Below are positions 97 through 60,318 of a stretch of DNA of 64,000 nt, in pieces. Position numbers and translations under genes: made by a program. Numbering within the stretch: position 1 is the first letter of the stretch; every line of letters starts with the position of its first letter. Source of the stretch: Bugula neritina (Eukaryota > Animalia > Bryozoa); NCBI GenBank assembly GCA_964035545.1, contig OZ037766.1:9414722-9478721 (forward strand), given 5' to 3'. Under the pieces are notes generated by a model, which saw only the letters and a program-made list of their open reading frames with translations, was not told the DNA's origin and did not search any database.

Positions 97-963
97 GATT
101 CCGAAGTAATGGGTATGACAATGGATGTGACCAAGAAAGAGCATATGCTTCCTATATCAGACACTGAAGTTATGAAAATTACATGTAAACACTGCAATAT
201 GTCGCCAATTGTTGGAACAAGATTCAAGTGCGGGTATGTAGTTTCAGCTTGTTTTCTTTACTCAGTTTCTAATAAATTTCCTAAAGAGTTTCAAATGCAA
301 ACAGATCAAGAATTACACTTATAGTTTTTCAAGTTTCATCCTTGTAGTTTTGGCAGTGAAACACAATTATTGCTGGAATTGCTGACACGTTAGAATTGTA
401 GTGTAGGGGTTACAAGTGATGTCAAAAAAGGGAGTTATTCGAAACTGCATCTATACTACATCAGCAAAGGACAAATCCAATTGAAATCTAAGCTGTTTGC
501 AACAGTCCAGTTTTAGTACATACCTACTTTTTGTTTGCTATCACAATGTTCAAGTGGTAGAGTAATGCATGGCAGAAGTTTTGATTTGGTAAAACATTTT
601 TAAAATGAGTTTTGATACTTTTATGGTTATCTATTTATCTTTGTTAAATTATTATTTAAACTGAAGCTCTAATCATCAAATTCTAAATTAAGGAATATTC
701 ATTAAAATATTTTCCAATTTTGTGGTCCAATGAGTTGTTGAGTTGTCTGCTCATATAAATGAGTGTAGATATGCCCTTTAGTATTGCATGTGTATAAAGC
801 AGTTACATCTGTATGCAGGGTATGTAGTGACTATGACTTGTGTGAAACGTGTGAAAAGACGAGTGAAGAGTTCCATGACCCGAAGCACCTGTTCCTTGTG
901 TTCAGATACCCTGTCAACTTCCACACCACAGTTCCTCAACTAACTTGGGACTTCTACCAATAA
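97..963 (+). CDS. RING-ZZ array gene 0 (5'-truncated by the window edge): last two coding exons 97-233 and 819-963 encoding a C-terminal ZZ zinc finger
   Basis: Splicing TGC GG|gtatgt ... gcag|G GTA gives [40 protein letters not shown], a full ZZ ligand set, ending TAA at 961-963. The phase-2 intron is in the same position as in the downstream paralogs. A RING exon is not visible in the window. Confidence 0.85.
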
Positions 964-1471
964 TAGATTTTGTGAACTGCTTTAGACTCTGGATAAATAA
1001 TCATTTTCCTAAATTTTACTTACATATGTTTTTATTTTGTAATTTAGATTATCTATTGGCTTGGTATTTCTTTTAGAGATTTGCATTTCTTCTGCTAAAG
1101 ATAGTAATATTGTTTACTTAAAGCACCACGTTTCTATGCTGCCGAAGGCAGAAAGATAAAAATAATAAATGACATTTAAAAATTTCTTTTTAAATAAGTT
1201 TAAAATTTGGATGCTTTAGCCTGGCACTATTTAAATCTTAGAACTTTTACGCTGTTTGGTGTGATGGCCAATAGGATTTTCTAAAAACTGTTATTTATAC
1301 TTCTGCTGAAATGAAAATTGTTTTTGTGCTTCTTTACTAGCTTGCATAATTATCTTCAAGAACAAGCTTCTTCAAAAGAAAAAATATTTTGCCTGGAAAT
1401 GTTTTTATGCCTGAAATCTATATAGCAAAGTGACCTAAAGATCACTTGAGCTTCCTGCATAGATACCCGAT

Positions 1472-1535
<64 letters not shown>

Positions 1536-2470: not shown

Positions 2471-2641
2471 TTGTATAGACCTCCCTCATAGTTAGTACTA
2501 TTAACTAATAATTTTATGTGCAATACATACTTTTATCATTTCTATGTACTCCTCAATGATATAAACTATCAAGTAAATGCATAAGCATAATCATTAAAAT
2601 AATCTCACATCGTTTAGGGGTACAAATGTTTAATAGCAAAA

Positions 2642-3242
2642 ATGGCCGATCAGTGGTACATTCCTGATGACACGAACGAGGAGGAAGTAGCTGTAACATG
2701 CAGAATATGCAGCAGGTTCTTTACTGATGCCAGAAGTTTGGAATGTGGAGACAGTTTTTGTTTCTGCTGCATAAAACGTGTTCAACAGAGTGAAGAGAAG
2801 ATAGCCTGCCCTGTGTGCACTACAGTGTGTGTGCCGGCCATGGTGGATTTGCATAGTTTACAGCCCAACTTCAATTTAAATAGCATGGTTGCAATAGTTA
2901 TGCAGCAAAAAGGTAAATTTAGAGGCATTGGTTTGCATTTAATTTATCTAGCATGCAACCTATAAAGATTGCATGTACAGTATAATAATTTAAATTTATA
3001 AAATATAAATGAAAAAACTTGACTTTCTATGCAAATTTTGCAGTTATTCAAGTTGAAAAAATTAAAAGCAAAGGGAACCACTGCACTGTGACATGTGATT
3101 TTTGTCGTGTCTCTCAATTTTATGGTCCAAGATACAAATGTGGGTAAGTGCAGAAAATGACATTACATTCATACTAGGAAAACTTGAGTTGATGGGTTAT
3201 GCAATGCATAAACATGATCCTTCTGCATAATATATCAAGAAA

Positions 3243-3304
<62 letters not shown>

Positions 3305-4478
3305 TGTTTACTCATCGCCCTATAATGAGTAAAAACAGCCATACAATTATACAGAGTGTGCGATGATTATGACCTCTGTGCAAAGTGCGAGGGAAAGCCG
3401 AGACAGGAAATTCACGATGAGTCTCACATATTCTTGAAGCTGAAGAGACCTCGCACTGCAGAAGGCTCACATGGGCCATCACTGACACAGGTTACTCTTG
3501 TTGCCCACAGATTTTCATAACCTATCATAAAATTATTCCCACAATTTGTTTTCATTCTTTAACTTCCTTTAATAAGATGTGAAATCAAATGGCATGCTAA
3601 AAATTACTTGTTAATGCACTAGATCCATATTGTAGCTTATTTTTGCTACATAAAGGTTAGTCTAGGTTACTTCTTATTTTTAAAATGTGGCTTTAAAACA
3701 TAGCTATTACCTATACATACTTTTTATACTAGATTCTTCTATATATCCTGTGGAAAACTTTCATTGTCACCTTCTGAAATAACTTTTAATAGGGATTTAT
3801 TGACAAAATAAAAGAGCTTAATGCACCGACTGGTACACAGACTCAAAATGAATGCTGTGCTCTCAAATGTACGGGATGTGAGAGTTCCATCCCAGAAGGT
3901 TATGTTTACAAGTGTGGGTAAGTTCAATAGTCTACAATTCAGCTATAATCACTATGTAGCAAACATGGCTACAATAATTGCTATTTTTACTAGTCGAACA
4001 CTGCTAGAACATTAATAGAACTTTTTAATTTGGCAAATTTACAATTTAGTTAAAATAAGCTAAAGTATAACTTTTCACTTCTACTCAGAAAACTAACATT
4101 ATGAATTGCTAAAGGCACTCAGAAATGTTATGCTGAAGTTATTGACAAAATAGACCTGTGTGTGTTGTGTGTGTTGTGTGTGCTGTGTGTGCTGTGTGTG
4201 TTGTGTGTGCTGTGTGTGCTATGTGTGCTGTGTGTGCTGTGTGTGTTGTGTTGTGTGTGTGTGTTTAAGAAACATTTGGATTACTCACAATTAGCAATAC
4301 TTCATTTACTATGACATTTTATAGATTATGCGAAGATTACATACTGTGTGACAATTGTGAAGACAACTCTGAAGAATTACATGACAAGAAACATGTATTT
4401 ATGAAAATACACGCCCAGCATCCTTTATGCAAAGATTTACCAAGAGAAGTGGTTTTGCAAGCAAAGTTCTATAAATAA
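2642..4478 (+). CDS. RING-ZZ-ZZ protein, paralog 1 (putative E3 ubiquitin ligase, 261 aa). Exons 2642-2912, 3044-3143, 3355-3490, 3793-3917, 4325-4478
   Basis: All introns are GT-AG and phases match (1,2,0,2); total 786 nt. RING CRIC-x11-CGDSFCFCC-x12-CPVC; ZZ1 CDFC..CGVCDDYDLCAKC..H-x3-H; ZZ2 CTGC..CGLCEDYILCDNC..H-x3-H. Probable non-coding first exon with donor GTGAGT at 2271. Confidence 0.88.
3243..3297. repeat. (CA)n microsatellite in intron 2 of paralog 1
   Basis: Direct observation. Confidence 0.95.
4157..4264. repeat. TG-rich minisatellite (about 9-bp TGTGTG(C/T)TG units) in intron 4 of paralog 1
   Basis: Tandem TGTGTGTTG/TGTGTGCTG units. Confidence 0.9.
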
Positions 4479-7902: not shown

Positions 7903-10900
7903 ATGGCCGATCAGTGGTACATTCCTGATGACACGAACGAGGAGGAAGTAGCTGTAACATGCAGAATATGCAGCAGGTTCTTTACTGATGCCAGAAGTTT
8001 GGAATGTGGAGACAGTTTTTGTTTCTGCTGCATAAAACGTGTTCAACAGAGTGAAGAGAAGATAGCCTGCCCTGTGTGCACTACAGTGTGTGTGCCGGCC
8101 ATGGTGGATTTGCATAGTTTACAGCCCAACTTCAATTTAAATGGCAAAGTTTCTGCAGTTATGCAGCCAAAAGGTTGATATAATCTTATATGTATTTTAA
8201 AATCAATTTATGTCACATGCATGCATGTGCTCAGTTCGTCATTCCAATTTTAATCTACTAGATTAAAATGTAAGTCCCATGTAAATGTAGCTGTTTACGG
8301 TCTTAAATTCTTTGGTCAAATTCTAGAGCAACATAGGTATTTTTGTTGAATGGCCAAATATGCCAAAAGCAGTTATGATTGATGAATGCTCTGCTTGATT
8401 TAAGATACATATTTATAAATACAATTATTGATATTGAGTTTAGACTTCACCTGCATGTCTACCTTCCTACAAAAAATTTCTCTTAGGGACACCGATGAAA
8501 CGTAATTAAAATTAAACAGCAGACGCAGTGTGATTAAAACGCAAGTTAATGCCTCTAGTACCATGAACAGTTAGATATTAGCAGCTGCTGTTTTTATCAC
8601 TGCTGTAACATAATGATATGTAAAATATCTGTAGTCATTCAAGTCGAGAAAATAAAGAGAAGGGGAAAACACTTTGGAGTAACTTGTGACTTTTGTCAGA
8701 CTTTAGGATTCTATGGCCCAAGATATAAATGTGGGTAGGTGAATAAAATAATCTAGCAAAACATGTCTATAATAAAAAAGTCATGTTGTCAATGTGATTG
8801 ATAATAAAATTGGTTTGACATTTCATTTTTGAACTTTCCATGGAACCCAGCCTTTAAACCTTTCACACAAAGTTTGCCCTACTAGTTCCGAATAATAGCC
8901 CAGTAGCACTTATCACAACTGAGTGTATAAACTACTCACCTAATCTAATCAGTTATGTACTAATTTTATAAATGTTAAACTTTTGCCCAACTGCCAAATA
9001 ACTAATTTATCCTTCAATATAACAAAGGTATTATATGCTCTGTAGCAAATGCTAGTAATGCAAAACTATAAAGCGAGAGTATAATTGCAGACATGTAATT
9101 TTTAACATGTTTGCAATTCTCAAACATGTAACTTGAAAATATTGAAAAATGATCATAATTGAAGATTATTATTTAAGATAAAAAGTAGAACAAAGTTGCC
9201 CAACTATGTCATTCAAAAACATGCATTTTTGCAGCTAAACTTGCAAAATTTTATATAATTATAACTTATAATGGTGAGATATTAGAGTTGGTACACACCC
9301 CTGATCTCGTTTGATTTTTATATGATCTGGCATGGGGTGGAAAAGGAAACGTTATAGGGAAAAGCAGAAGTCACACTCATAGGCTAGTACAAGTCTAAGC
9401 CAACCTTGTAGTGCTTTGTTTCTATATGAATATGAACACATATTTATATTCTAAGTGCAATTGCAGCGTTTGTGATGACTACGATGTTTGTGAGAAATGT
9501 GAGGCTAAGCCACGAAATGAAGTTCATGATGTATCCCATGTGTTCATAAAACTGAAGAGACCTCAGACAGCTAAAGCATCCTATGGCCCCTCATTTACAC
9601 AGGTACTCAACTGCAGTGACATTTTGAATCAGCATTTATACTTGTGTGGTGGCTCGTGGAGCTACCAGCAGCACAGCATACAGGGTCGCGTAATTGACCC
9701 GGAACAATTGATAGCCAATTAGCGGGTTTGATAGTTAGCAGCAATAATAGTTTTCCTGCTGTTAGTCAGTCGAAGTTAGAGTGCTGAATAGACTAGATGT
9801 GTAAATTGTCAGATGTATTTGTCTCGTTTTTATAATGTATTATTGTGTGTAAAATATATACTCGTTCACTCGACTTATCTTGGTGCAGTTCTATAGCAAG
9901 TAATTAGACTCTCTGGATAGCATATCAACCCTAAATCTGAAAAACTTAACAGTGGTGGCAGTGGTGGGATAGTGCATCCAAGATGGAGACTGAAAATGCT
10001 GGAACGCAACCACCGGCAGTAGAAGGTGAGCGTAGAGACAATGCTGTAGAGACAATGCCTGTTAACCATGTAGTAGAAGAGCGAAGGGTTCCGCGAGAAC
10101 TAACTGAAGACCGCTACCGGTTAAAGGCGCCCACCTTCACGGGCGAAGAGGAGGTGGAACAATTTATCCAAGAGTTTAGCGACGTAATGGACGTCGCCCA
10201 GTGGCCCCCTAGGGTGGCCTTGCTGAAGCTTAGAATGGCATTGATGGACAAAGCCAAGCCTTATGGGCTGGGCGTAGACATTGATAATATCTTTGCTTCT
10301 CTGCGGGCCCGCTTCGGCCTCTCTGCTACAGATGCCAGGGCCCGATTGCAGAGGTTGCGGCGTGATCCCCGCACCCCGCTGCGGGAGCACGCCGCCGCGG
10401 TCATGAAGCTGGCACAGATTGCGTACAGCGACTTGCCCCCAGTCAACCGCGAGAGGTATACCCTCGACGCTTTCATAGCATCTGTCGACGATTTGGGTCT
10501 CCACCACCAGTTTCTAGCTAGGGGAGTCACCATCGTTGAAGATGCTCTGACTGAGGGAGAAGCTTACCTCCTAGCTAATCAAATGCATAAAAGTCGCGGG
10601 AGCTCCCGTCAAGTGGAGGTAGACCGCGCGGACACGGCCGCGGGACAAGGGGAGGAAACCCCCGCCGCGGCTGCCGTGTCCCAGCTGGCGACGGCATCGA
10701 AAGTCACTCAACTGACAGACATGCTGGCCAAACTGATAGCAACACTGACACCCCAAACCCCAGTGAGTACCGCCACTGAGCCCGTGCGGCCGCCGGCGCC
10801 GCCACAGGGAGAAGCAGTCAGTTTTTGCTGGGAGTGCGGAAATCAAGGACATTTCCGCCGATACTGTCCCTTCCTAAATCAGGGGTTAAACTACCGCGGC

Positions 10901-13900
10901 CCGCAGATGTTCCCACCTCCTGCGGGCCGACGATGAAACCTCCAGGGAAGAAGAAACGCAGGTCACCCAGACGGGTACTGCGTACTGGTAACCAACCGTG
11001 GCAACAGCCACGACGGACCAGCAAGGGGCTCCGCCCCGCCGCTACCTTTTCCATGCCCCTTCACAACAGATTCGCAGGGCTACAAGTCCAAGAATCTGTA
11101 TGGGAGCCCACAAAGGTAGCCGGGAATCTAGCCTCGGCACCCCCGAGGCCTACTTACCACCGCCCCAAGAGACCTCCTTCGCGACCCAAAGCGAGGGAGG
11201 TACTCCCTGCGAGAGTAAGGCCTGAAGGGAGAGTTCAGGTGCAGCCCCATGGGAACAGCTATTTCTTGCCCGGTAAACTGGAAGGCAAAGCTGTTACTTT
11301 CCTCATTGATTCGGGCTGTACCACGAACCTCTTGAGCCGCCAACTCTTCGACACCCTCAGTGCTAGGGCACCCTAGCTGACGGGTCATGCCTTCCCTTCT
11401 ATGGTATAATTGAGCTGACGGGACGAGTCCGTGATCAAACGATCCAAGAGACGTTCATCGTCAGTCAGCTCAAGGAGGACGCCATCCTCGGGATGCCATT
11501 CCTAAAACGGCACGGATGTCACATCGATTTTAGCAAATCTGCGATGATGATGTCCGGGCGAGAACTCGCCTGCGTCGACAAGTTCGGCCGCCCTTTAGTG
11601 GGAGGTGTGCAAGTGGTACGCAACCGTACCATACCAGGCCGCTCCCGGGCTACCATTCACTGCAGGGTGAATAATAGCCGGATCTCTGGACTCGGGGTAG
11701 TTGAAGGCGCGCACGAAAAGATCCAACTTGCCAGCAGTCTGAATCAGCTGACTGAGCAAGGGGAGATCTTAGTGCAGTGCGTCAACCCCTTTACCGAGTC
11801 TGTCAAGCTTCCGGCTGGGTCGATGCTGGGCCGTTTTCACTCTGTTCAGGAGGAGGACGTAGGCCCGTCGCTGGGTGATGCGACAGGGGCACTCCCTCAG
11901 TGCCCTACTCAAGGGCGAGGGACAGTCCCAGCACATCTCCGGGAGTTGTATGACACAGCCTGTAGCGGCTGCGCGAGTAACAGAGAACGCCAAGTTATGG
12001 CGAAGTTACTACGCAACTACGGTGATGTGTTCAGCAGCGGAGATCATGACGTGGGACTGACTGGAATTGTCAGACACGAAATACCGTTGACTGCAGGAAC
12101 ATTCCCTGTCCGGCAGCCCACACGCAGACTGGGGCCGGAGAAAGAGAAGGAGGTTAGCCGACAAGTACGGGATCTTCTGGACCGGGGACTGATAGAGCCC
12201 GCCCATAGTGCGTGGAGCTCGCCGGTCGTGCTGGTCCGGAAGAAAGACGGCAGTTGGCGGTTCTGTGTGGATTACCGCAAACTCAATAGCGTAACCATAC
12301 AGGACGCCTACCCTCTACCTCGTATTGACGAGTCGTTGGACGCCCTAGCCGGCAGCAAGTACTTCAGTACGTTAGACTTGCTGAGTGGCTATTGGCAAGT
12401 CCCTCTAAGTCCCGACGCCCAGGAAAAGGCGGCGTTTATCACACGGGACGGGTTGTGGAAGTGGAAGGTGTTGCCTTTCGGGTTGACCTCCGCCCCAGCC
12501 ACCTTCCAGAGGCTGATGGAGCAAGTCCTCAGCGGGCTCCATTGGAAGACACTGCTGATCTACCTCGATGATGTCATCGTGATCTCCCCAGACTTCGAGA
12601 CACATGTCAGTCGTCTGCAGGAGGTTTTCGAGAGACTCCGAGGTGCCGGTCTTAAGCTCAAACCTTCTAAGTGCGCTCTATTGCAGCCAGAGGTTAAGTA
12701 CCTGGGGCACGTTGTCGGGCGAAACGGCGTGGCAACGGATCCCGAGAAGGTGCGGGCAATAGAAGACTGGGTCAACCCCCAAGACTTGACCGGACTCCGG
12801 GCTTTCTTGGGGCTGGTAGGGTATTACAGACAATACATACCAGACTTTGCGGGCATAGCACAGCCATTAAACCGGCTCACCGCAAAGGGAGTGACGTGGC
12901 AGTGGACCCCAGTCGAACAAGGAGCGTTCGACCGCCTCAAGGGCTGCCTGCTAACGGCGCCCATCTTGGCCTACTCAGACCCCACTCTGGAGTACATCCT
13001 CGACACGGACGCCAGTGACCAAAATGTTGGCGCTGTGTTGTCTCAAGTGCAGGAAGGCCGAGAGGTAGTAGTAGCCTACTACAGCAAGTCTCTCTCACCC
13101 ACTGAATGAAATTACTGCACTACCCGCAAAGAGCTGCTGGCAGTAATCAAGTCAGTGAAGCACTTCAGACCATACCTATATGGCAGGAAGTTCCGGCTGC
13201 GTACGGATCATGCCTCGCTGATCTGGTTGTGCAAGAGAGCAGAGCCCTCTAGTCAGGTCGCCTGGTGGCTCGAAATCCTAGCTGAATTCTCATACCGGAT
13301 CGAACATCGACCGGGCAAGAGACACAGCAATGCGGATGGGTTGAGTCGCCGACCTGATGGAGGTTGCAAACAGTGTCTCAACATCGAGAGGAGGGATGGA
13401 GGTCCCCCGCGATGCGAGTTGGAGACGCTGGCTCACCACGGAGCACCGTTTGACTGGGACCAGGGTCAACTCAGACAGGAAGTTGATGAGTCCCCGGAGG
13501 GTGTACAAAACCTCCGCGCCAACCCTGTACTGGCCGGTAATGTTCGAGAGCTGAAGAAGCTCCAAGAAGAGCTGCCTGGAGTCGTGGCAGACATATACCG
13601 GGCCAAAGGGGAAGGGCGACGACCCAGCGAGGAACGCATACGACAGGGATGCGCCGAGTTCCGGCTATACTGTCAGCGTTGGGACTCGCTGCGGATCGGG
13701 CAGGATGGGTTACTAACCATCTCTTTAGCCGCCAGCGGCAGACACCCGGAGAGGAAGAGGGTAGTCTGCCCCACTGCCATCCGCCGTGAGTTGATTTGGG
13801 ATACTCACAAACAGGCCCACGCAGGGGTCAAGAGAGTGATGTCCAAATTACGACTCCGGTGGTATTGGCCACAAATGGAGCGTGACGTCCGGCTCAGAGT

Positions 13901-16900
13901 CAAACAGTGTGAGATCTGCCAGGCCAGTAAGCATAGCCGTCCCCCTGGTGAAGCAGGACGGCGGAGGCTATATGCTGGTAGGCCCTGGCAAGTAGTCGCT
14001 GTAGACCTGGTCGGACCCATGCCCCTGACCCCCAGAGGCAATAGTTGGATCTTAGTACTAACCGACCACTTTACTAGGTGGGCGGATGCTCTGGCTATCC
14101 CAGATGCGTCAGCCCCAACAGTGGCCAGGGCACTAGACCAACATGTATTCTGTTATTTTGGTCTCCCCGAACAGATACACTCTGATCAAGGCGCTCAATT
14201 CCAGTCTCAACTGATGAGCGACCTTTGCCACCTCTGGGGAGTAAATCAGAGCCGGACCACCCCCTACCACCCTCAAGGTAATGGGGTGGTGGAGCGCAAC
14301 AACCGGATGCTAGGTGATGCGCTCCGGAGTCTTCTCCTTGGACGAGGCCAAGAGGAATGGGATACGGTGTTGCCGCAAGTCATGCGTGCATACCGTAGCA
14401 CCCCACACACCAGTACTGGTGAGACCCCAAACCTCTTGATGCTCGGGAGAGAGACTCGTGTCCCTGACCATCTCACCTACCACGTTCCAGAGCAAGACAA
14501 CTCGGTTCACGAGTATGCCAGTGAACTAGTGGAACGGATGAAGGCCGCACACGATATACTGCGCGAACAGCAGTGGAAGGTGCGGCACGAAGATTCCGAT
14601 GAACCACCTCTCTACCAAACGGGAGATAAGGTGTGGATGGTCAATTACCGTAGGCGTCGCGGACAGGCTGATAAACTGAAGCCTAAGTTCGTAGGACCCT
14701 ACGTGATCGTCGAGGCTATGCCCAATCATACGTACAAGATTGAGCGCTCAGGACAGGTGTCTATCCAGAATGAGTCTCGCTTGAAACCGTATTGGGCTAG
14801 CCCCGACGCAGTGGGAGAAGCCCCCCCGTTGTTGGAACCCAGGAGGCAGACAACAACGCGCGGGCGACGGCGGCATGGACCTGAATACGAAGTGGTCATA
14901 CCGCGGGAAGAAAACTTGGTGAGAGAGGAGCGACAGCTTTTGCCAACGGAAGCGTGTCCGCCACCGCCAAGTTTAATTCCATCACTTCCAGAAACCGAGC
15001 CGGTTCCGGAAGTGCAAAACCCCACGGAGGGAGGGGCTCCATCCGGAGAACAAGAAGAGGTGACCGCTAACGGTGAAGTGGAGACGCCATTAGAGGCCCC
15101 TACTAATGAACCGGCGAGCGTGTCACCCCCCCTAGAACGGGGGCAGCGTACGAGACAACCCCCCGCATACTTGAAGGACTTCGTATGCGACTGCGTTAGA
15201 AGCGGCGCGTATGAAAGTCTAGGGGAAAACCGTACGAGAAAAGTATCGAGCAAACGTGGGAGTTGTCAACACCACGAAAATATCAACTTTTGTATCGGCG
15301 GAAATAGAAACAAAATTCATCCGCCGGGTGCACAAAGTCTTAATCACGCACCCCAACCACGTTGCTCGATCTTTTCATACGCTGATGCAGTCAGGAGTAG
15401 ACGTGTTTCTAAGCAGTAGTTCAAACCATTTCACACATTCAGTATGTCTTACGACAACAGATCGTGGGGTGAGTTAACTATATCTTAATATGAAACTAGA
15501 TTGCATCGCTCAGCTCCGACTCACTGAGTCAATCGAGCTGGAGATAGGTTAGTGAAATACCGTAGTAAGAACTCAGTTTGACTTAGAGATTTTTATAATC
15601 TCATTGCAATACGTGTTCTATCTGACTATTCACTACCATAAATCTCTACGAGGTAACTGAATGAGGAGTTGCCAGGCTATTCAAGCCGACAACACGGCAG
15701 TGTACTGTACTAACACTGTTGAAACTTTTTCAGATTACACTCGACCCGCTACAACCAGGGTACGGGATAGAGCACTTCCCGCTCCGCATCCTGGGGAGTA
15801 TGCCAATGGTGACCGGCCCGAGCCACTGCGCCGCCGTTGGCGGTGGGTGTCTCCAGAAACAGAGGAGCAGATAGAAACGGCCTGGGGGTCCAGAGGACGG
15901 ACGCGGTGCCAGATTTGTGGCGAAGAATGTGCCTCTCACTGCTCCTTGAAGCTACATGTCAACGCCCATCTCTTACTCACATTCTGCCCCTGCGGATACA
16001 ATGATGTCTACCCCTACCCTGTCACCAGACATCGAGCAACAGGCTGTTTCTCCGGAGAGAATTACGTGGTAGATGCCAAGCTCTATCCAGAATTCCTCAC
16101 TCTGATACGACCTCTAGTAAAGAAGGCGATGTTGTTAGCCGTCCTGACCTCGGGTTTCCAGCGTGTACTAAACAATGCCAGGCAACAATCTCCATTGGTA
16201 TCTGACCGCCCTCAGATTGCGTACACTCCCGAAGAGTTTTCCTATCCCGAAGAAGGAGAGGTCTCCCCTACCCCGATGAAGAGACGAACCAGGTCTCCCA
16301 GTCCCCCTCTGCGCCGCAGACGGACACTGTCCCCAGACCCTGCTCGCCTGGCCACAGTAGAGGAACGTCTCCTCCGATTACAGGAGGAATTTACCCAGTT
16401 AGCACCCGACCTGCTCAACACCACGACGGGGCTCTTCCAACTGAAAGGATCAGTGGGCCGGATCAAGCGGAAGCTACGTACATGCCAAGCCAAACATCGG
16501 CGTGCCCAACATTGACTCTGGTTCTGCTACCCGGAATAATCCACAACTTCGTCCTCTTGGGAGACCCAAGACTATCATGCAAATGCTTGACTGCTCGACA
16601 GGTCGACTCTTTGTCCAATACACAGTTAGTTTAAGGTCATTACTTTCCAAATTCAGGCACTGCTTTATGTTATATATAAACGGTTTCCAGGGGATAGCTC
16701 GAACAGTTTTTGTCTCACATTAACAAGTTTTACATGAAAAGATAGCTCTTGCATTCCTCTTTCATATACTTTTTTAATTTTTCAATAAAAAATTTTCTGA
16801 GAAAGTTGTTGCATAATAAGTAAAATTTTACACCCTCCATGTTCCACTGCTGTAGCACAGGGGATTCGTTTTATAAAGTCTAAAAGTTAAACTTGACATT

Positions 16901-19900
16901 CCTTGATATGTTTTCTCTAATATACTTTCTTTGTTTTTTGAAATTCTGTTTATGCTCTTCACAATTTGGTAAAAACATACACCATTTTGCAAGTTTCACT
17001 GCAATTTTCTAAATTCTTCATATGGTGGTTCTAGCTACGCTCCTGTGACTAATTATAACATTCCTAGTACGTTTGCCGCTCTGCGCTATCACAATAACAT
17101 ATAGTACCCTCTCGCACAAATTGGCAATCTATTGGATTTCTGCCAATATAATGTTCCCTGTTTTACATTAGCACTTAGCTGAATCATCTCACTATGTTAC
17201 AATAATAATATATTGAAAATGCCTCAGCACAACATAATTCTTTGTTTGTTTGGCAGAGTTAATTTCAGCTAAATCACTTCACTTTGCAGTCTTGTCAGTA
17301 AAGGTCTGTCTATAGCGCAGCAGGTGTATACTTTCAGTTTCTCTAATTCACATATGATTATTTTAAGTACATTGTATTCTATAAGATCAATTTAAGGTTT
17401 AGTCCAGTGTTCAGTATCTAATTATTATGCATGTATGTTGTCTTACTGTTGAACAAAAGTTAAAAAAAAACTTTACAATTATAGCCATATTTATTATACA
17501 TGCGTAGGATTTGCATAAGTTGACAAAAAAAATTGCAACAAAATAGGGTTGAACCATGACCAACCAACTCGTCGCTGACGCCTCTAACCTCTGGACCACG
17601 CAGTCATTATTCAAAAGACGCGCACTATATGAGTCACTATGATTACATAAATATTTCGCTCGCAAATGGGTTATAATTATTAGGCTGTCAATTCATGTTG
17701 ATAGCAGTCAACTGTTGCAATAGTCTCGGGTTACTAGCAAAGCTAATGGTTTTGAACAAATAACCCAAAAGTTTAAAAATAAGTAGCTTGCGTATTACTA
17801 GCTACAAAAACAGGTCTGAAATAGACTGGTAAAGCAAGCTCTTATTGTAGAATTTGCAGATGTGCTCTAAAATAAAACTTAAACTGTATGCTATTACATA
17901 AGTATTTGTATGCGAGAGATAAATGGACATTACTGAGTTTCTGGAAAACAACATACTTGAAGTTAACTTTGACAATGGTGTGTTATTTTCATCATAGCTA
18001 GCCTATAGCATAAATCTCTAATCATATGAATCTTTATGAAGCCCACAGCTCATGTAAGGGTGGCAATGTAATTTGAAATGAACAATTATGTTGCTGCATT
18101 GTGTCTAAGGTATATTAGAGAGCAAAATTTGGTTTTACTAGCCTACCCCAACGGCATTCTACAATGCAGCTTATATGCTGGCAGTTGTAATAAGTACTGC
18201 CAATAGCAAGGTTACTATCACTGCTAGCTCTGTGCAGCATGTAACCTCTTGAATAATTGCGCCAATTTTAAACTCATGGAAGTTGGCCAAGTTATCATAT
18301 CGCAGCCAGCCACCGGAGACAAAGCATCAGAGCTATTCATATAATATTATACTAATGCACTTGGTAGCAGAGTGGCTAATCTAATATAGTTCATAGTTCC
18401 ACACCCTTTACTTTGGGAATACAGCCTCTTTTTTTAGGTTTACCTTACAAAGCATGAAAATATCTAAACTGATATTCTGATAATTTAGAGGTACATTTTG
18501 AAAACTAGGTTAATTGCACTTGTTTGCACAACAACAATAATAAAATAGATATTATGCAGTATAATAAAAACACACATAATACTATATAATATATTACAAT
18601 GATAATAATATAATATTATAAGTACCATTACTGCATTTTATAAATCACATGATTGCCAAAAAAATGTATCACAAATTTTGTAATTATACATCAAAAATAG
18701 AACTAGCTAGGCAGCAGGTTAGAATAAAGTAAATTTTTAAAACATGAAATCATGATTTGACTATTGTTTTATTTAGGCCAACCAACCTAGGAATACAAGA
18801 TTGGGTTTTAGCTGACAGTTTATAACATTTAGCTTTTGAGCCAGCAGCACTGGCACTTGTGAAGTATAGGCAAAGTTAGTGAAGCGAGACTAACAAGCAC
18901 TCAAATACAAGGCATATTGAGACACAATAACAAGTCAGGAGCGTATAAATTGAAAAGAATGTGGAAGGGGGACTATGTTTTTCAACAAGCTATAACTTAA
19001 ACATGAATTGGCTTTTGAAAAAAATAAAAAAGTATATTGGAGAACATAAGTTTCTTTATCTTTTCATATTTTTTTTGTTCCTGTGACATTCAACCTGTTC
19101 GAGCTATCAGTGGAACATTGTTCATATAGAACATAAAGCACCTGGCAAAGAGCCAGAAAATGAAAAGTATGACCTTAAACCAACTGTGTACTACAGCTAG
19201 CCGGTATTCCTCCTCTATAGCTGGCCAATTGTATGTAACTTGCTGTTATAATGACTCTGTCTGTTATTAGATATCTTTATATGTGTTATGTACTATCTTT
19301 TGGTCTACTGATGTATGTGGTTAATGATGAATGTTTTTTTATCAGAAAGAGGGCTTTCTGCTGGTGGGGGCGGTGTGGTGGCTCGTGGAGCTACCAGCAG
19401 CACAGCATACAGGGTCGCGTAATTGACCCGGAACAATTGATAGTCAATTAGCGGGTTTGATAGTTAGCAGCAATAATAATTTTCCCGCTGTTAGTCAGTC
19501 GAAGTTAGAGTGCTGAATAGACTAGATGTGTAAATTGTCAGATGTATTTGTCTCGTTTTTGTAATGTATTATTGTGTGTAAAATATATACTCGTTCACTC
19601 GACTTATCTTGGTGCAGTTCTATAGCAAGTAATTAGACTCTCTGGATAGCATATCAACCCTAAATCTGAAAAACTTAACACTTGTACATTTGATAGAATA
19701 ATGTTCACGCTTGTAGTAATTACTGAAATGTTGTTAAAATATTATTTATATATTATGTGTTTATAGCTTAGCTAATACAACTGATTGAGTTAGCATTGCA
19801 AAGGTTTAAACAACAAATACCAGCAGGTTAATTTTTTATCAAGAAGTAATAAAATTTTAGATAATTACAATAACTTTAATTTTCAAACATTTTGAAGCAA

Positions 19901-20631
19901 TTCATTGACCAAATGAAAGAACCTAAACCGGAAACACAGACTTGGAAAGAATCTGATTTTCTCAAATGCAACCAATGTAAGATTTCTATTCAAGATGGTC
20001 ACGTTTATAAATGTGGGTAAGGAAAAATAATTTCTATCCCTACTTAAAAAGTTAACACGAAATATGCTTTTAATATGTCTAACAATATATCTACATATAT
20101 GAAACAACTTGTAAATATTACATTCAGGCTAACAATGCTGTAATGTATAAGAGACACTGAATTAACACCATTTTGAGATACAAAATTTAAGCTACTTTTC
20201 AAGACTATATAGGCGGCCAGTAGAAATATAACTAAATTTGACTATTTTACAAACTATTCTAGGCGTTGCTTAGCTGGTAAGACTACATAAAATTGTTGTA
20301 GAAATTTTTAGTGAAGAGCCTACATGTGAATTATGACCAATTTATTTGACACTTGCTTGAATTAATTAAACAGCTCATAATAAATGACCTACTCAGTTGC
20401 AGAGTAAGTTCAAAGGCCGGGCCATTAGTTGAGCCAACTGCAGGTAATATAATGCTTATGTTTACTATAATATACAGATCATGTGAGGACTACATACTGT
20501 GTGAAAATTGTGAGGACAAGTCTGAAGAATTTCATGACAAGAAACATCTATTTATGAAAATACACGCCCAGCATCCTTTATGCAAAGAGCTGCCTAAAGA
20601 AGTGGTTCTGCAAAGAGAATTCTACAAATGA
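7903..20631 (+). CDS. RING-ZZ-ZZ protein, paralog 2 (259 aa). Exons 7903-8173, 8635-8734, 9467-9602, 19898-20016, 20478-20631; intron 3 contains the Gypsy element
   Basis: Exon sizes 271/100/136/119/154 mirror paralog 1 (271/100/136/125/154) with the same phases; the spliced frame is open to TGA at 20629-20631. The exon 4 acceptor is a weak TTTTGAAG. Confidence 0.85.
9645..9951 (+). repeat. 5' LTR (307 bp)
   Basis: TGTGGTGGCTCG...AAACTTAACA; differs from the 3' LTR at 4 positions by my count, all transitions. Confidence 0.97.
9953..9970 (+). promoter_or_regulatory. Primer-binding site complementary to the tRNA-Leu 3' end
   Basis: TGGTGGCAGTGGTGGGAT begins 1 nt after the LTR and is the reverse complement of the metazoan tRNA-Leu (AAG/TAG-type) end ...AUCCCACC(A/G)CUGCCACCA. 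Confidence 0.85.
9983..10936 (+). CDS. gag: Gag (317 aa) with C-terminal CCHC zinc knuckle
   Basis: Intact ORF 12 nt after the PBS; capsid-like APTFTG..EQFI..F..V..W region; CWECGNQGHFRRYC knuckle. Confidence 0.93.
   Translation: METENAGTQPPAVEGERRDNAVETMPVNHVVEERRVPRELTEDRYRLKAPTFTGEEEVEQFIQEFSDVMDVAQWPPRVALLKLRMALMDKAKPYGLGVDIDNIFASLRARFGLSATDARARLQRLRRDPRTPLREHAAAVMKLAQIAYSDLPPVNRERYTLDAFIASVDDLGLHHQFLARGVTIVEDALTEGEAYLLANQMHKSRGSSRQVEVDRADTAAGQGEETPAAAAVSQLATASKVTQLTDMLAKLIATLTPQTPVSTATEPVRPPAPPQGEAVSFCWECGNQGHFRRYCPFLNQGLNYRGPQMFPPPAGRR
10885..10949 (+). promoter_or_regulatory. Programmed -1 ribosomal frameshift signal (gag to pol)
   Basis: G_TTA_AAC (10885-10891) in the gag frame, 5-nt spacer, perfect 10-bp stem CGGCCCGCAG (10897-10906) / CTGCGGGCCG (10920-10929); loop TTCCC can pair with GGGAA (10945-10949). 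The -1 frame is open into the protease. Confidence 0.85.
10891..15419 (+). pseudogene. pol: Pol (aspartic protease, RT, RNase H, integrase with GPY motif), inactivated
   Basis: LIDSG protease motif (about 11302-11316), YLDD (12561-12572), LDTDAS RNase H, HHCC and D,D35E integrase, KFVGPY, terminal RTRQPPAYLKDFV. Frame break near 11367 (TLSAR then GTLADG in another frame) and in-frame TGA at 13107-13109. Confidence 0.95.
15661..16515 (+). CDS. Retrotransposon ORF3 in the env position: C2H2 plus C2HC zinc fingers, basic SP-rich segment, coiled coil; probably expressed as spliced 9983-10025 + 15734-16515 (274 aa)
   Basis: CQIC-x12-H-x3-H and CPC-x12-H-x4-C; KRRTRSPSPPLRRRRTLSP; heptad-like LATVEERLLRLQEEFTQL; GC-rich like gag/pol; no signal peptide or convincing TM anchor. 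Confidence 0.8.
   Translation: MRSCQAIQADNTAVYCTNTVETFSDYTRPATTRVRDRALPAPHPGEYANGDRPEPLRRRWRWVSPETEEQIETAWGSRGRTRCQICGEECASHCSLKLHVNAHLLLTFCPCGYNDVYPYPVTRHRATGCFSGENYVVDAKLYPEFLTLIRPLVKKAMLLAVLTSGFQRVLNNARQQSPLVSDRPQIAYTPEEFSYPEEGEVSPTPMKRRTRSPSPPLRRRRTLSPDPARLATVEERLLRLQEEFTQLAPDLLNTTTGLFQLKGSVGRIKRKLRTCQAKHRRAQH
15708..15733 (+). promoter_or_regulatory. Branch point plus 3' splice site for an ORF3 subgenomic mRNA (partner donor at 10025/10026)
   Basis: TACTAAC at 15708-15714 and ACTTTTTCAG ending at 15733; donor GAAG|GTGAGC in gag codon 15. The join G+AT restores ORF3 codon GAT. Confidence 0.75.
16621..19188. mobile_element. Non-autonomous TIR DNA transposon, copy A (2,568 bp; CMC/EnSpm-like), nested in the Gypsy 3' UTR
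   Basis: 20-bp TIR CACAGTT(A/G)GTTTAAGGTCAT ... ATGACCTTAAACCAACTGTG, 2-bp TSD TA, subterminal inverted GATAGCTCGAACAG, no long ORF; near-identical inverted copy at 43416-45967. Confidence 0.92.
19363..19373 (+). promoter_or_regulatory. Polypurine tract
   Basis: GGTGGGGGCGG abutting the 3' LTR. Confidence 0.7.
19374..19680 (+). repeat. 3' LTR (307 bp)
   Basis: Direct repeat of 9645-9951 followed by TSD CTTG. Confidence 0.97.
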
Positions 20632-21673
20632 GTTGGACATCAATTATAATTGCAGCACCAAAACTTGAGTGCAAAAGACAAAATGCAAGTGTATGGAAGC
20701 AATTAACTATAAAATGCAGCTTTATATTGTATGCGATAGAAAAATTTGAATATAGTAAGCCTACTGCTATAATATGGTGAAAAAGCCTCAGCTGTTTTTG
20801 GTTGGTTTATTTTGCTTTTTGTGAAATTTAAAGTATAAATTTTTGGATGCTTGATTCTTTTTTATAACTCTCATCTTATGTCCAACAAAATACTCTTTTC
20901 AATGAACTATCTCAAGAAAACATTTCTAACTATTTCTATACATTGATTTTTAATCTTAATTTATTTTTTCAAAGTGGCTATATTCTACAAATATATATTA
21001 TAAATGTAATTTGTAGTATTTAATTATTCATCATATTATGTACAGCTACATTTTATTTATAGTAGGCGTCATAATAATTATATATGCAAGTGGTGCAAAA
21101 TAACTCTTAAAGCAGTACTATTCTGATTGCAGCTGAAACATGGCTAGACTATATTGTTATACAACCGATGAGCACATAGCCAAGTAGGCAATAACTGGCA
21201 TTGTGTATGTTCAATAGAGACATGGCAATAACAACAAAATGAAACTGATTTGGGAAATTTTAAAATCATTTCCGCGTAGCTTATCGTGCAGTTACAAAGG
21301 CTTGGGGTAGTAATGAAATGCCAAAAGCCACAGTAGTAAGACAGTTGGACTTTACAAGCTAAGATAAAACAAAAGACTATACTGGTTAGTAGCTTTATCA
21401 TATTTTAGTAGATTCAACAATTAGCACTCTAACATTTTATTTCATGAACTACAATGTTGTCAGGGATGGATCTTCAAAGTTAAACCTATATTAGATATTT
21501 GACTTTGATTCATTAAATCAATCAATTTGCCAATATAAAACAAGCAAACCCAATTTCAATTTTAAATTGACAACTTTTAATTTCAAAGTAGGTGCTTGAT
21601 AAAAAAGTATAAAACATAATGAAAAGACTACATGATGAGTATGAATACTAGTTTACTGCAGAGAGGTGATAAG

Positions 21674-24600
21674 ATGGCTAGCCTTCCTCTTCGAGGGATG
21701 GAGGATGTGGTGACGTGTAGCATTTGCCAGGAGCTATACACAGATGCTAGAACTCTCACCTGTGAGCACTGCTTTTGTATGAAATGTCTCCTCTCCTACC
21801 AGACGTCCATAGTGATCAAACCATGCCCTATGTGTAGGGAAGAAACGGTGCCGGCAGCTAGGGAGCTACACAGGCTGCCCAGTAACAAGGCTGTCAACGA
21901 GATGGTGGGACTGATTGTTAGACATAGGAGTAAGCATTGTTCTTTTATCTAGTTGAGTTAATTTGTGTTTTAATTCACTACTTATAAATCAGAAAATGTA
22001 AAATTGATAATAATACAGTCTTAAGACCCTGGCTATGACCATCTAGTAAACTGATCCAAGCAAAAGATACACAAACACTTGAATTCTCTGCTTTAACAAA
22101 GTTACATGCACTGTGTTGATGCATCATGTTGAAACCAAGCTATTTATTCACCCCAGTACTATTCATAAAGTGAAATCCAAAAAATGAAAGCTTGTGATTT
22201 GTTAGATTCATATTTTTATAATGCACGAATGCCATCCTGTTTATTTCTAACTTTTCAGGTAACCAGACCGGAGACAAAACAACAGGTCAAGCTGCAGGTC
22301 AATCAGCAAGTAATGCAGCAGGTAATGCAGCAGGTCAAGCTGCAGGTCAACCAGCAAGTAATGCAGCAGGTAATGCAGCAGATAGTGCAGTAGATAACAC
22401 AGCAGGAAATGCAGCAGATAGTGCAGTAGATAACACAGTATAGATTATGCAGTAGGTAAAGCCAGCAAATATAAAAAATATGTCTGTAAATGTTGTAATT
22501 TTGGAATTCTTTTGATCTACCTTACTCTGATACCTGCTTATAATAACTCTATTGAAAAAATATGTTCCTGAATTGTTTTCACATGGATAATACATACTAT
22601 TGGAGTTGTGTTACCAACTAGTGGGTTGAAGTCTCAGGCACTGAACTGAAACTATAATAGTTCAATGGTCTCAGGAATAACTCATTCAACCAGCTTTTGT
22701 TGATTGACTAGGTTAAAAGTCATTATTAGAAAATTGCATAGTTGGGTGAGCATGGACATGAAATAATTGCCATAATATACATTACTATGCCATAGACTAT
22801 AGAGCAGGGCTGTCCAACAAGCAACCCCAGGGCCGGATGTGGCCCCCAGCCTACATTTATGTGGCCCTTAGATACATAACACATAAAATTATTTTCACAC
22901 TGTACTTATATAAATTAGTTAATGAAAAGCCACCTTTTAAGATGTCTTATTTATACACACGCTACTAAACATGTAGTCTGTAGTCATTATTTGGACTTTA
23001 TTGTGTAATGATTCATAAGAAGTTGGAATAAAGTAATTTGAAAAGACTGATGCTGTGGCCCCCAGCACAAACTAAAGTTGACAACGTGGCCCTCGCCACG
23101 AAATGTTCCTTTTTAGTGGCCCTCGCTCTGAAAAGGTTGGACACCCCTGCTATAGAGTATACATTACTATGCCATAGGGCATAGACTATAGAGTGAGGTA
23201 ACACCAAGTAACAGCTTTGAATACTTAGCAGATATGGGAATAAAACATTAGCATATAGGCTACATATAGTTAACTTTTCTGAGAAGTATATTTTATCATG
23301 TAAAATATATAATATGGTATAATCTACATCAAGGCCTATTGAAAATTAAAAAATGGCCATCAAGATGGCTCTTAATAAGTTATTCTAAAATTAAGAAAGG
23401 TATTTTTTACCCATTACAGGAAATTCAGGCACTAAAACGACTTTAAACAGTGCTAAGCAAGCATCTACTGGAGTGAGTCTGGCAGAGCTTCTTGCAGGCC
23501 GTAGAGCACCACGGACAGCAGACCCAGCGCCTGCTCCTTCAGGTAAACATGCCAGTTCTTGCTTTGCAGAAATTCTAGTGGTCATTGTTGTACCGTGTTA
23601 TAAGCTGCTCATCAATCTAAAGCTTGAACTTAATTTACCATTTCAGTGAAAACTTCTGCGAAAAATGTCCATTCTTTACCTGAACCAAGAAATCAATCAA
23701 TAGCTGAGATCACTCTAACAGAGTTGATAGAGCGTAGGGAGCAGCAACAGAGAGAAGCTAGAGCTGCTAGAGCAGCTAAAGCGGCAGCAGCAGCGCAATT
23801 AGAAGCAGCAGTAGAGTCTTTGGCTGAAGCTTTTGCTTTTATATCCAATGGTGAAATACTAGATTATGTTTATTCAATTTTAGATGAGCAGCTCTATTGT
23901 CTAAATGCTCCTACTGTAAATGTTACAAACTACATTTAACAATCTTGACATGCCCAAATTAGAAGGGCTTGTAGTGATTCAACTAAAACAATTAAATGAA
24001 GCCAATAAGTAGAGCAGGTCAAGTCGAAGTGAGTTCAACTCACGTTGTTTTGTATAAGAAAGTCCCCTCTAACTTTACCGCCTACAATCTAGATTATCAT
24101 CAGATAATCAGCTTCACTAAAAGTTGTTTGATAGTAAAGTTTAAGTTATAAAGTGTTTGTTATGTAGATGATAATAAAACAATGTCTTTAGATAGCAGAC
24201 CAGGGTCCGGAGCTGTACACAATGGTGTAACCTGTGATGAATGCTATGCTACAGATATCAGAGGAGTACGTTATAAGTGTGGGTAGGTTGAGTATGCCAA
24301 CTTGGTATGTTATAAATAAGAATATTTGTTGCACAGCTACCTATAACACATTTGGCAATTTTAAACTCAACTTAGCATATGAATTAAACTTTAAAGTATA
24401 AGTAATAAATGATATTGTTTCACAATTTGAAAGTTTTTAGCTTACGCCATGTTAGGTGGTAGCATTAATAATTGATCTCAATAATATATATAATTAATAA
24501 TCAATAAAGAAAACATTGATTGGTATGGCTTATTATTATCTACCTATCATATAATTTTCACATCAGAATACTGCAAAGATTTTATAAAATGATACTACAG

Positions 24601-25852
24601 TGTTTATAACAAAAGCAAGCTATTTTAATAACATTAGATTTGCTCAGCATTACCTTTCCATTCAACTATTTACTGTTTTCAAACACTTAGCACATATATT
24701 GATTAATACAAAGCAATTTCGGAACTTTTAACAAACTGCTCAATTTGTGTCTTTTACAGAATATGTGATGACTATGATTTGTGTGAGAAGTGTGAACAGA
24801 AGCCAAGACGGTTTGTTCATGATAAGACTCATATTTTCATCAAGCTAGATAGACGAGCCTCCCGAGGAGTTAGAGGACGTGTGCTTGATTTGGTAAATCT
24901 TTGCTCCCATTGTCATTTACTCCACAATACTTCATAATTTATTTACCTATATACATTTTTGAATTTCAACTTTAAAAGATGCAGAATATTTCAGTAAAAA
25001 TAACTCTTTTAAAGTAATTGTTTTTGGTTTTGTACCATGGAGTGCAGCTACATAACTCTTTAAAAAAATCAGGTGGCCTATGGAATCGGGCAGAAGATGA
25101 ACTTTGGCAGTAATGTGCAGACAATATCAGTTCCTCTAGGAATATTTAATGCAAGTGTGCAGGTACCTATAGATTGCGACAGATGTGGTAAGAAACCTAT
25201 CATTGGAACAAGATACAAGTGTGGGTAGGTTGATTAATAATTTTTATTCTTGAGCTTGAAAATAAAAATAGTGACTTTGATGTTTTCGTGAATAATGATT
25301 TAATACTTTAAACTGGTGTTTGCATTAGAAATCAAATAAACTTGGATTATTGATTTTTAACGACATATATGTATGCATGGGTTTCTCATTCTACGAGATA
25401 AAAAAATGATTAGTAAGGCGCATTATAAGGACCGGCAACCAGTATAAAAGTGGCAATTGGTGCTGACATAAGCATCTGACTTTCCAATAAATAAATGAAT
25501 TGCTTAAATAAACGGCTACTTTACATTAATAAAAAAAATTTTAGTCTATAAAAAGCAATGTTTACCAAACCCTACAGGGCATTCTGTTTTGTGACTCAAC
25601 ATATGTTTAAAAGTGGTTAGAATACAACTTAATGTTTTTAGTACACAAACTATATTTGTATTTATGTTATATGTAAATAATGGATCATATTCTTTATTTA
25701 CTCACAGAATGTGTGAAGGCTATGATCTATGTGGAGATTGTGAAAAACAGAAAAACTCTTTCCATCCATCCGATCATGTTTTTCTTGTTATCTATCACCC
25801 GTCTTCACAACTAGGGCAATGCAAGAGATTGATGAGGTGTGCTATGTACTAA
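21674..25852 (+). CDS. RING-linker-coiled coil-ZZ-ZZ protein, paralog 3. Exons 21674-21929, 22259-about 22369 (donor uncertain), 23420-23542, 23647-23850, 24168-24282, 24760-24892, 25073-25224, 25708-25852
   Basis: Canonical C3HC4 RING CSIC..CEHCFCMKC..CPMC; three symmetric phase-1 linker exons; ZZ1 CDEC..CGICDDYDLCEKC..HDKTH; ZZ2 CDRC..CGMCEGYDLCGDC..HPSDH; same ZZ intron positions as the other paralogs. Confidence 0.8.
22285..22456 (+). repeat. 12-bp coding minisatellite, consensus GGTAATGCAGCA, encoding (G/S/D)(N/Q/S)AA
   Basis: Units such as GGTCAAGCTGCA, AGTAATGCAGCA, GGTAATGCAGCA, GATAGTGCAGTA, GATAACACAGCA. Confidence 0.9.
22805..23149. mobile_element. hAT-family MITE (345 bp) in intron 2 of paralog 3
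   Basis: TIR CAGGGCTGTCCAAC / GTTGGACACCCCTG; exact 8-bp TSD CTATAGAG (22797-22804 and 23150-23157); subterminal GTGGCCC motifs. Confidence 0.92.

Positions 25853-60133: not shown

Positions 60134-60318
<185 letters not shown>

Follow-up and report, generated by a model that had tools for sequence, protein, structure and literature searches.

A Tandem Family of Small RING-ZZ-ZZ Genes in the Bryozoan Bugula neritina: Candidate Ubiquitin Ligases with a Putative N-Terminus-Reading ZZ Domain

Gene Models at the Locus

The subject of this work is a tandem group of genes encoding RING and ZZ zinc-finger domains in a 64,000-nucleotide (nt) stretch of DNA from the bryozoan Bugula neritina (assembly GCA_964035545.1, contig OZ037766.1, positions 9,414,722 to 9,478,721 of the forward strand), to which we refer throughout as the window. 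Six-frame motif scans combined with codon-level reading of the splice junctions place the group at 97-25852 on the plus strand, where it comprises one 3′ fragment (gene A) and three complete genes (B, C, and D). A preliminary description of this DNA had reported four genes on the same strand, the fourth showing only a terminal ZZ, and this is borne out by the motif scans, the junctions, and the exon sums: all junctions are GT..AG, and the summed exon lengths are divisible by 3 for each gene. The window has a G+C content of about 32%, with the exception of one G+C-rich insert, and its introns are short and of the GT-AG type. Microsatellites are present, including microsatellites and short tandem repeats inside the introns of B and D (3230-3290, 4160-4260, and 22184-22393).

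Two sets of sequences recur as points of comparison. The first is a pair of predicted proteins from the bryozoan Watersipora subatra, P0011/P0154 (XP_067935728.1/XP_067935727.1) and P0072/P0157 (XP_067948739.1/XP_067948732.1), all of which carry the name "uncharacterized protein" in RefSeq. The second is a set of three contigs (L001, L002, and L006) that are colinear with window positions 1889-25848 at about 83-90% nt identity; of these, L001 and L006 probably represent a sister species or lineage. The exons were placed as follows.

97-233, plus strand: gene A, N-half exon of the last ZZ, with Lys at the position of p62 Asp129 (motif scan, Pfam)
819-963, plus strand: gene A, ZZ C-half exon and stop (PF00569 positions 24-38, E 4e-4)
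2642-2912, plus strand: gene B exon 1, TRIM-like RING (Pfam, alignment to the TRIM21 RING)
3044-3143, plus strand: gene B exon 2, ZZ1 N-half (junction reading, pocket residues)
3355-3490, plus strand: gene B exon 3, ZZ1 C-half (junction reading, Pfam)
3793-3917, plus strand: gene B exon 4, ZZ2 N-half (Thr and Val aligned with p62 Asp129 and Arg139)
4325-4478, plus strand: gene B exon 5, ZZ2 C-half and stop (Ile aligned with p62 Asp149)
7903-8173, plus strand: gene C exon 1, RING (97% nt identity with gene B exon 1)
8635-8734, plus strand: gene C exon 2, ZZ1 N-half (junctions, Pfam)
9467-9602, plus strand: gene C exon 3, ZZ1 C-half (junctions, Pfam)
19898-20016, plus strand: gene C exon 4, ZZ2 N-half (junctions)
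20478-20631, plus strand: gene C exon 5, ZZ2 C-half and stop (junctions)
21632-21929, plus strand: gene D exon 1, canonical C3HC4 RING (62% identity to P0154)
23420-23542, plus strand: gene D exon 2, linker (both junctions phase 1; L001 conserves it with an open frame)
23647-23850, plus strand: gene D exon 3, helical linker rich in Ala, Glu, and Arg (both junctions phase 1; in-frame 6-nt indel in L001)
24192-24282, plus strand: gene D exon 4, ZZ1 N-half (junctions, Pfam)
24760-24892, plus strand: gene D exon 5, ZZ1 C-half (junctions, Pfam)
25073-25224, plus strand: gene D exon 6, ZZ2 N-half (acceptor placed via the alignment to P0154)
25708-25852, plus strand: gene D exon 7, ZZ2 C-half and stop (junctions, Pfam, conserved in L001)
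955-960 (A), 4467-4475 (B), 20620-20628 (C), and 25844-25849 (D), plus strand: codons of the C-terminal motif

Gene A (97-233/819-963) thus contributes a single ZZ within the window, with its 5′ part lying beyond the window start. Genes B (2642-4478, coding 786 nt) and C (7903-20631, coding 780 nt) have five exons each and pack a RING, a ZZ1, and a ZZ2 into about 260 codons, whereas gene D (21632-25852) has seven exons and encodes about 367 amino acids (aa; 367-381 aa), with its likely start at the ATG at 21674. The difference lies in exons 2 and 3 of D, which encode a linker of about 110 residues that is first Pro-rich and then Ala/Glu/Arg-rich and helical. We note that the model of gene D was revised, by adding exons 2 and 3 and by using the earlier acceptor at 25073, on the basis of its alignment to P0154 (363 aa) and of the conservation seen in L001. 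The proposal that these are minimal RING-ZZ-ZZ proteins therefore holds for B and C but not for D, with its additional linker exons.

Domain Architecture and the Intron within Each ZZ Finger

Genes A-D were scanned against Pfam exon by exon. The first exons of B and C match zf-C3HC4_4 (E 6e-9, 36.3 bits against a cutoff of 30), and that of D matches zf-RING_UBOX (E 6.5e-8, 32.9 bits against a cutoff of 25.2) as well as zf-C3HC4 (28.6 against 21). The ZZ N-half exons match positions 1-22 of PF00569 and the C-halves positions 24-39. The two halves of ZZ2 in B and C are too diverged to give an exon-wise Pfam score, yet they retain all eight zinc ligands, and the ligand pattern Cx2C...Cx2C...Cx2C...Hx3H is complete in all seven ZZ fingers. 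None of the A-D exons has a B-box, SPRY, ankyrin, PB1, or HECT match in Pfam, and neither a B-box nor a TRIM_CC match is found in any A-D exon, in P0154, or in P0157; the linker of gene D gives coiled-coil-like matches below threshold only. The order of a RING followed by two ZZ fingers, free of the five other domain types just listed, had been proposed in the preliminary description and is confirmed both by these scans and by the RefSeq models of W. subatra and a single-frame contig (L005) discussed below.

Each of the seven fingers is cut by a phase-2 intron at one and the same position, the Gly codon directly after the third Cys ("xKCG"), with the donor TG[TC]GG/GTA[ATG]G (exon/intron) and the acceptor (y)nAG followed by 1 nt of exon. 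The recurrence of this junction in seven ZZ fingers cannot be chance. Because every ZZ is split in this way, no list of open reading frames (ORFs) shows one, as had been suspected at the outset. The window genes share a RING with ZZ1-spacer-ZZ2, phase-2 introns in the ZZ fingers, and a C-terminus with an aromatic residue and Tyr as the traits that define the family. The C-termini of A-D, P0154, and P0157 carry an aromatic or hydrophobic residue together with a Tyr at or beside the end (FYK, FYQ, AMY, NFY, and LLY, each directly before the stop), and may represent a conserved terminal motif.

RING Domain

The RING and the helix that follows it align with the RINGs of TRIM2/3, TRIM21, and TRIM5. 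A search of 1.84 billion representative proteins with a profile built from the three RING exons gave 4980 matches at E<=1e-3. A B-box is present in 39 of the 74 proteins of 180-800 aa among the best 150 of the 4980 matches, indicating that the RING is of the TRIM type. The RING of D, like that of P0154, has canonical zinc ligands and contains the linchpin Arg (CPxCRE). In the alignment to the TRIM21 RING, B and C have Asp at the position of the His zinc ligand and, within the sequence CPVCTT, Thr at that of the linchpin Arg, and do so in both lineages. The Ile after Cys1 and the Pro after Cys7, which contact the E2 enzyme, are retained in all RINGs compared.

Residues of the ZZ Pocket

In the ZZ domain of p62, Asp129 (between Cys128 and Cys131) and Asp149 (between Cys145 and Cys151) hold the α-amino group of the bound peptide, while Asp147 contacts the first peptide nitrogen and Arg139 the second residue; selection of the side chain falls to Asn132 (PMC6098011). 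The ZZ of the Arabidopsis N-recognin PRT1 holds the α-amino group with the same two Asp residues (PMC12370974). The residues found at the five p62 positions in the window fingers are listed here.

B-ZZ1: Asp at 129, Asp at 147, Asp at 149, Arg at 139, Arg at 132
C-ZZ1: Asp at 129, Asp at 147, Asp at 149, Arg at 139, Gln at 132
D-ZZ1: Asp at 129, Asp at 147, Asp at 149, Arg at 139, Tyr at 132
D-ZZ2: Asp at 129, Gly at 147, Asp at 149, Arg at 139, Gly at 132
Last ZZ of A: Lys at 129, Asp at 147, Asp at 149, Arg at 139, Asn at 132
B-ZZ2: Thr at 129, Asp at 147, Ile at 149, Val at 139, Glu at 132
C-ZZ2: Asn at 129, Asp at 147, Ile at 149, Val at 139, Lys at 132

The equivalents of Asp129 and Asp149, which form the two-Asp clamp, therefore occur together in four fingers: the ZZ1 of each complete gene and the ZZ2 of D. 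Among solved structures, those closest to ZZ1 are the ZZ domains of HERC2 (E 6e-10) and p62 (E 2e-8).

Relatives and Taxonomic Distribution

The best matches of the RING profile are fragments from exon-sized ORFs together with the two W. subatra proteins P0011/P0154 and P0072/P0157, which are the only ones to carry a ZZ among the best 150 of the 4980 matches. By Pfam, both P0154 and P0157 consist of a RING and two ZZ fingers, with the two ZZ of P0154 reaching 73.8 bits. The RING exons of the window are 94-96% identical at the protein level to exon-sized ORFs on metagenome contigs of the Joint Genome Institute (JGI; P0001-P0003), and A0A7J7KQX6 is a family member from B. neritina itself.

The W. 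subatra locus that encodes P0154 (L003) holds three RING/ZZ genes in tandem on the same strand, and the intron described above interrupts their ZZ fingers too. Its gene 1 resembles gene A of the window, in that both have Lys where p62 has Asp129 and both carry a PVN[FY]HT tail, and A best matches the ZZ2 of that gene; its gene 2 is the orthologue of D. Genes B and C have no counterpart between these two genes, but the sister lineage has orthologues of both (L006 and L001). We therefore abandon the initial view of a recent local expansion: the array is old, as A- and D-type genes were already neighbors in Watersipora, the synonymous divergence between B and C is saturated in the ZZ exons, and B and C are both present in the sister lineage.

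A second subfamily is represented by P0157 in W. subatra, by P0159 in B. neritina (automatically named "nhl-1"), and by P0160 on the JGI contig L005. Between the RING and ZZ1, its members carry a hydrophobic segment some 35-40 residues long, which is possibly a membrane anchor. The B. neritina region of this subfamily lies at 10001-12228 of contig L004, with another RING+ZZ gene near P0159. Elsewhere on the same contig (2267-4167, minus strand), a RING-only model of 164 aa and a ZZ-only model of 141 aa stand head to tail, and probably represent a single RING-ZZ gene that the annotation has broken in two. L005 is an intronless contig of 1273 nt on which RING, ZZ1, and ZZ2 lie in one reading frame, with an in-frame TAG 17 codons ahead of the conserved end; because it is cDNA-like and in a single frame, it provides transcript-type evidence that the RING and the ZZ fingers belong to one gene. 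The arrangement ZZ1-spacer-ZZ2 is colinear between the two subfamilies, and the double ZZ is thus older than the family's diversification; the alignments indicate that it is a module of single origin.

Word-index protein searches with P0011, with residues 190-363 of P0154, and with P0157 returned bryozoan relatives and a protist protein with a PB1-like region and three ZZ domains but no RING (P0158), and no RING-ZZ-ZZ protein outside the bryozoans. As the same searches missed known Watersipora paralogues, this blank result is weak evidence of absence, and the absence outside bryozoans is provisional both on this account and because it draws on the best 150 of the 4980 profile matches. Our literature search, on RING-ZZ and tandem-ZZ families and on bryozoan genomes, found no published description of this family. 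Within these protein and literature searches, the earlier impression that no such animal family has been described thus stands, and the family appears, as far as searched, to be unnamed and known so far only as uncharacterized bryozoan predictions.

Selection and Gene Conversion

Rates of nonsynonymous (dN) and synonymous (dS) divergence were obtained from Nei-Gojobori counts summed over exons, comparing the window with L001. For gene C we obtained a dS of 0.187 and a dN of 0.036 (ratio 0.19, Fisher p = 1.5e-7), and for gene D a dS of 0.205 and a dN of 0.030 (ratio 0.14, Fisher p = 1.5e-10). Ratios so far below 1 indicate that the genes are functional and constrained, and give no sign of a gene-wide arms race. 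The B/C-type RING is likewise under strong purifying selection between orthologues, with a proportion of nonsynonymous differences (pN) of 0.023.

The comparison between paralogues B and C is far less uniform. Their first exons differ with a dS of 0.03, and 2642-2841 is 100% identical, whereas the synonymous sites of the ZZ1 exons are saturated (proportion of synonymous differences, pS, of about 0.86) and the ZZ2 N-half exon reaches a pN of 0.40. When B and C of both lineages are compared, nt 1-229 of exon 1 contain 11 variable sites that follow species and 0 that follow paralogy, whereas 7 sites in nt 245-266 follow paralogy; in the ZZ1 C-half exon, there are 12-19 differences between orthologues as against 40-44 between paralogues. 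This grouping by species in the RING part and by orthology in ZZ1 reflects recurrent gene conversion that is limited to the portion of exon 1 coding for the RING, and the site grouping gives the following tract, the 3′ boundary of which is sharp (about nt 232-245 of exon 1). The DNA upstream of exon 1 in B and C is only about 60-70% identical.

2642-2873 (gene B) and 7903-8134 (gene C), plus strand: gene-conversion tract, RING-coding part of exon 1

The preliminary description had pictured a shared catalytic module combined with variable ZZ readers. As a description of B and C this is accurate, given the contrast between their RING and ZZ1 exons; the sharing of the RING is, however, explained by gene conversion.

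Comparison with Known RING and ZZ Proteins

Reading of N-termini by ZZ domains in animals is known from proteins that are large or are not ligases (p62, HERC2, KCMF1 together with UBR4, ZZZ3, and p300), and PRT1 is, to our knowledge, the only compact RING+ZZ ligase that acts as an N-recognin. PRT1 is also the nearest functional analogue of the bryozoan family: it is likewise a small E3 ligase made up of RING and ZZ domains only, and its two ZZ Asp residues have equivalents in ZZ1 of B, C, and D. It differs, however, in its pair of RINGs and its single C-terminal ZZ, the loops of which are long and hydrophobic, where the bryozoan proteins have one RING and two ZZ, and the similarity of its ZZ to the bryozoan ZZ is weak (E 2.5e-4, compared with 6e-10 for HERC2), ranking below p62 and KCMF1 as well. 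As both the architecture (RING-RING-ZZ) and the ZZ sequence differ, the relation to PRT1 is a parallel and not one of orthology.

The ZZ fold is held in common with p62/SQSTM1, and the equivalents of Asp129, Asp147, Asp149, and Arg139 are all found in ZZ1, but p62 is an autophagy receptor with the architecture PB1-ZZ-UBA and no RING, and its Asn132 is replaced by Arg, Gln, or Tyr in the bryozoan ZZ1. The ZZ of HERC2, the best solved match of ZZ1, shares its HxxxH zinc site and recognizes free N-termini; HERC2 itself is a giant HECT ligase with one ZZ. KCMF1, MIB1/2, and ZSWIM2 also have a ZZ in an E3 context, which in comparison with P0154 reaches E values of 3e-7 to 5e-5, but none of them is RING-ZZ-ZZ: KCMF1 lacks a RING, MIB combines MIB/HERC2 and ankyrin domains with C-terminal RINGs, and ZSWIM2 is SWIM-RING-ZZ-RING. 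Finally, TRIM2/TRIM3/NHL-1 and other TRIMs are alike in the RING and the helix after it, but the bryozoan proteins lack the B-box, the TRIM coiled coil, NHL, and SPRY, and have two ZZ fingers where TRIMs have B-boxes. Lacking a B-box and coiled coil, they are not TRIMs.

Proposed Function and Alternative Explanations

Taking these comparisons together, we lean slightly toward the view that the genes form a tandem family, restricted to bryozoans as far as searched, of small RING ligases in which ZZ1 reads N-termini; ligase activity, N-terminus binding, and specificity are all predicted here from sequence. In such a protein, the TRIM-like RING and its C-terminal helix would form an E2-recruiting and probably dimerizing module, and ZZ1 would bind the free α-amino end of a substrate through the two Asp residues and the Asp/Arg pair (the equivalents of Asp147 and Arg139), as in p62, PRT1, and HERC2. 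The residue at the Asn132 position (Arg in B, Gln in C, and Tyr in D) could give each paralogue its own N-terminal preference, and the RING would then ubiquitinate the protein docked by its N-terminus. ZZ2, with its zinc module intact but the clamp residues gone in B and C (as in the ZZ of A), is more likely to be structural or to bind other proteins. A stronger version, in which these are minimal N-recognin ligases parallel to PRT1, with the ZZ1 pocket setting distinct specificities while gene conversion keeps the RING uniform, is one that we put forward only tentatively and with more doubt than conviction.

Several observations weigh against N-terminus-reading ligases. B-ZZ2 (with Thr and Ile), C-ZZ2 (with Asn and Ile), and the ZZ of A (with Lys for Asp129) lack the two-Asp clamp, such that the variable N-degron readers envisaged in the preliminary description would be limited to ZZ1 of B, C, and D and, in part, D-ZZ2. 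In the second subfamily (P0157, P0159, and P0160), the Asp129 equivalent is gone from both ZZ fingers, and N-terminus reading is thus not the function of every member. The RINGs of B and C deviate at a zinc ligand and at the linchpin. In addition, an AlphaFold2 model of P0154 residues 185-363, built from a four-sequence alignment, has a mean predicted local distance difference test score (pLDDT) of 46 and yields no usable ZZ-ZZ fold. Lastly, binding of an N-terminus need not mean degradation, since the ZZ domains of HERC2, ZZZ3, and p300 read histone H3 or SUMO with the same Asp residues.

This last point leads directly to an alternative in which the ZZ docks the ligase on the N-terminus of a partner, such as the histone H3 tail or SUMO, and the protein acts as a signaling or chromatin E3 with no role in degradation. 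The HERC2 ZZ that is the best solved match of ZZ1 was crystallized with the N-termini of SUMO1 and H3, and identical acidic residues serve docking and N-degron uses (PMC12370974, PMC6098011), such that the sequences alone do not separate this possibility from N-degron reading. No nuclear or chromatin domain was, however, found by Pfam in the A-D exons, P0154, or P0157, and we regard a pure docking role as unlikely.

The deviant RINGs of B and C, which may represent weaker or partner-dependent ligases, raise the related question of whether the two proteins are weak or inactive RINGs serving as heterodimer partners or adaptors for a canonical RING such as that of D, in the manner of BARD1/BRCA1 or BMI1/RING1B. 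The Asp for the His ligand and the Thr for the linchpin Arg are seen in both species, the helix after the RING, which dimerizes in TRIMs, is conserved, and gene conversion holds the RINGs of B and C identical, all of which would suit such a role. Against this, the E2-contacting Ile and Pro are retained, and Asp is able to ligate zinc in some RINGs, while the purifying selection on the B/C-type RING fits an inactive partner and an active ligase alike. We therefore consider it distinctly improbable that B and C act only as partners.

The reading of the preliminary description, a fast-evolving, locally expanded array of defense or quality-control ligases with diversifying ZZ readers, would fit the tandem arrangement, the strong divergence of the B and C ZZ exons (greatest in the ZZ2 N-half), and the variation at the specificity position among paralogues. 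The dN/dS of 0.14-0.19 between orthologues is, however, that of ordinary purifying selection, the array has four genes only, its A- and D-type members were already adjacent in Watersipora, B and C are old duplicates with saturated dS, and no immune-type domain was found; the claim of a defense-type pattern is not supported, and we give this explanation little credence. Finally, it is hardly conceivable that the models are artifacts, with RING and ZZ exons in separate transcripts or in decaying pseudogenes, and we reject both the pseudogene and the mis-joined-exon readings, as, despite the 10-kb retrotransposon in an intron of gene C (see below), both species keep every reading frame open and dN/dS lies well under 1, the intron phases fit, RefSeq joins the RING and ZZ exons in Watersipora, and L005 has the RING and two ZZ in one frame.

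Retrotransposon Insertion and Neighboring Genes

Intron 3 of gene C (10.3 kb) contains the following element.

9645-19680, plus strand: Ty3/gypsy long terminal repeat (LTR) retrotransposon, 10,036 bp

Its LTRs are 308 bp each and identical at 304/308 positions, and it is flanked by a target-site duplication, CTTG. L001 has an empty site exactly at the insertion junction, and the insertion is therefore recent and lineage-specific; the exons of gene C are intact despite it. The gag, protease, and reverse transcriptase of the element lie in three different frames, its pol is broken by an in-frame stop at 13107-13109, and there is an additional ORF of 284 aa at 15661-16515. The 3′ part of the element, at 16.6-19.37 kb, is unusually AT-rich and without ORFs.

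Beyond the array, the neighboring gene, on the minus strand at 29560-32520, has a ZZZ3-like architecture, with a Myb/SANT domain at 31098-31421 and an unsplit ZZ at 29700-29653 (PF00569 E 4.6e-7) that does not have the intron found in the RING-ZZ-ZZ family. Further along, also on the minus strand, a run of I-set, C2-set, and V-set immunoglobulin (Ig) exons extends over 39045-56656, with a transmembrane-like exon at 39045-39266, and looks like one or more genes for Ig-superfamily surface proteins. Repeats are also found at 60060-60400, with a long (CA)n run near 60.2 kb.

Implications

The practical impact of these observations is moderate, as bryozoans are not experimental models. If the proposed function is correct, however, the combination of a small animal TRIM-type RING with a clamp-bearing ZZ would provide a simple and tractable second example, next to PRT1, of a compact N-terminus-reading ligase, arrived at by parallel domain assembly. 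Furthermore, the locus is a clean natural case of exon-limited gene conversion, in which the RING is homogenized while the readers are free to diverge, a pattern of uniform RINGs and divergent readers that is often invoked for modular ligase families but rarely with such sharp boundaries.

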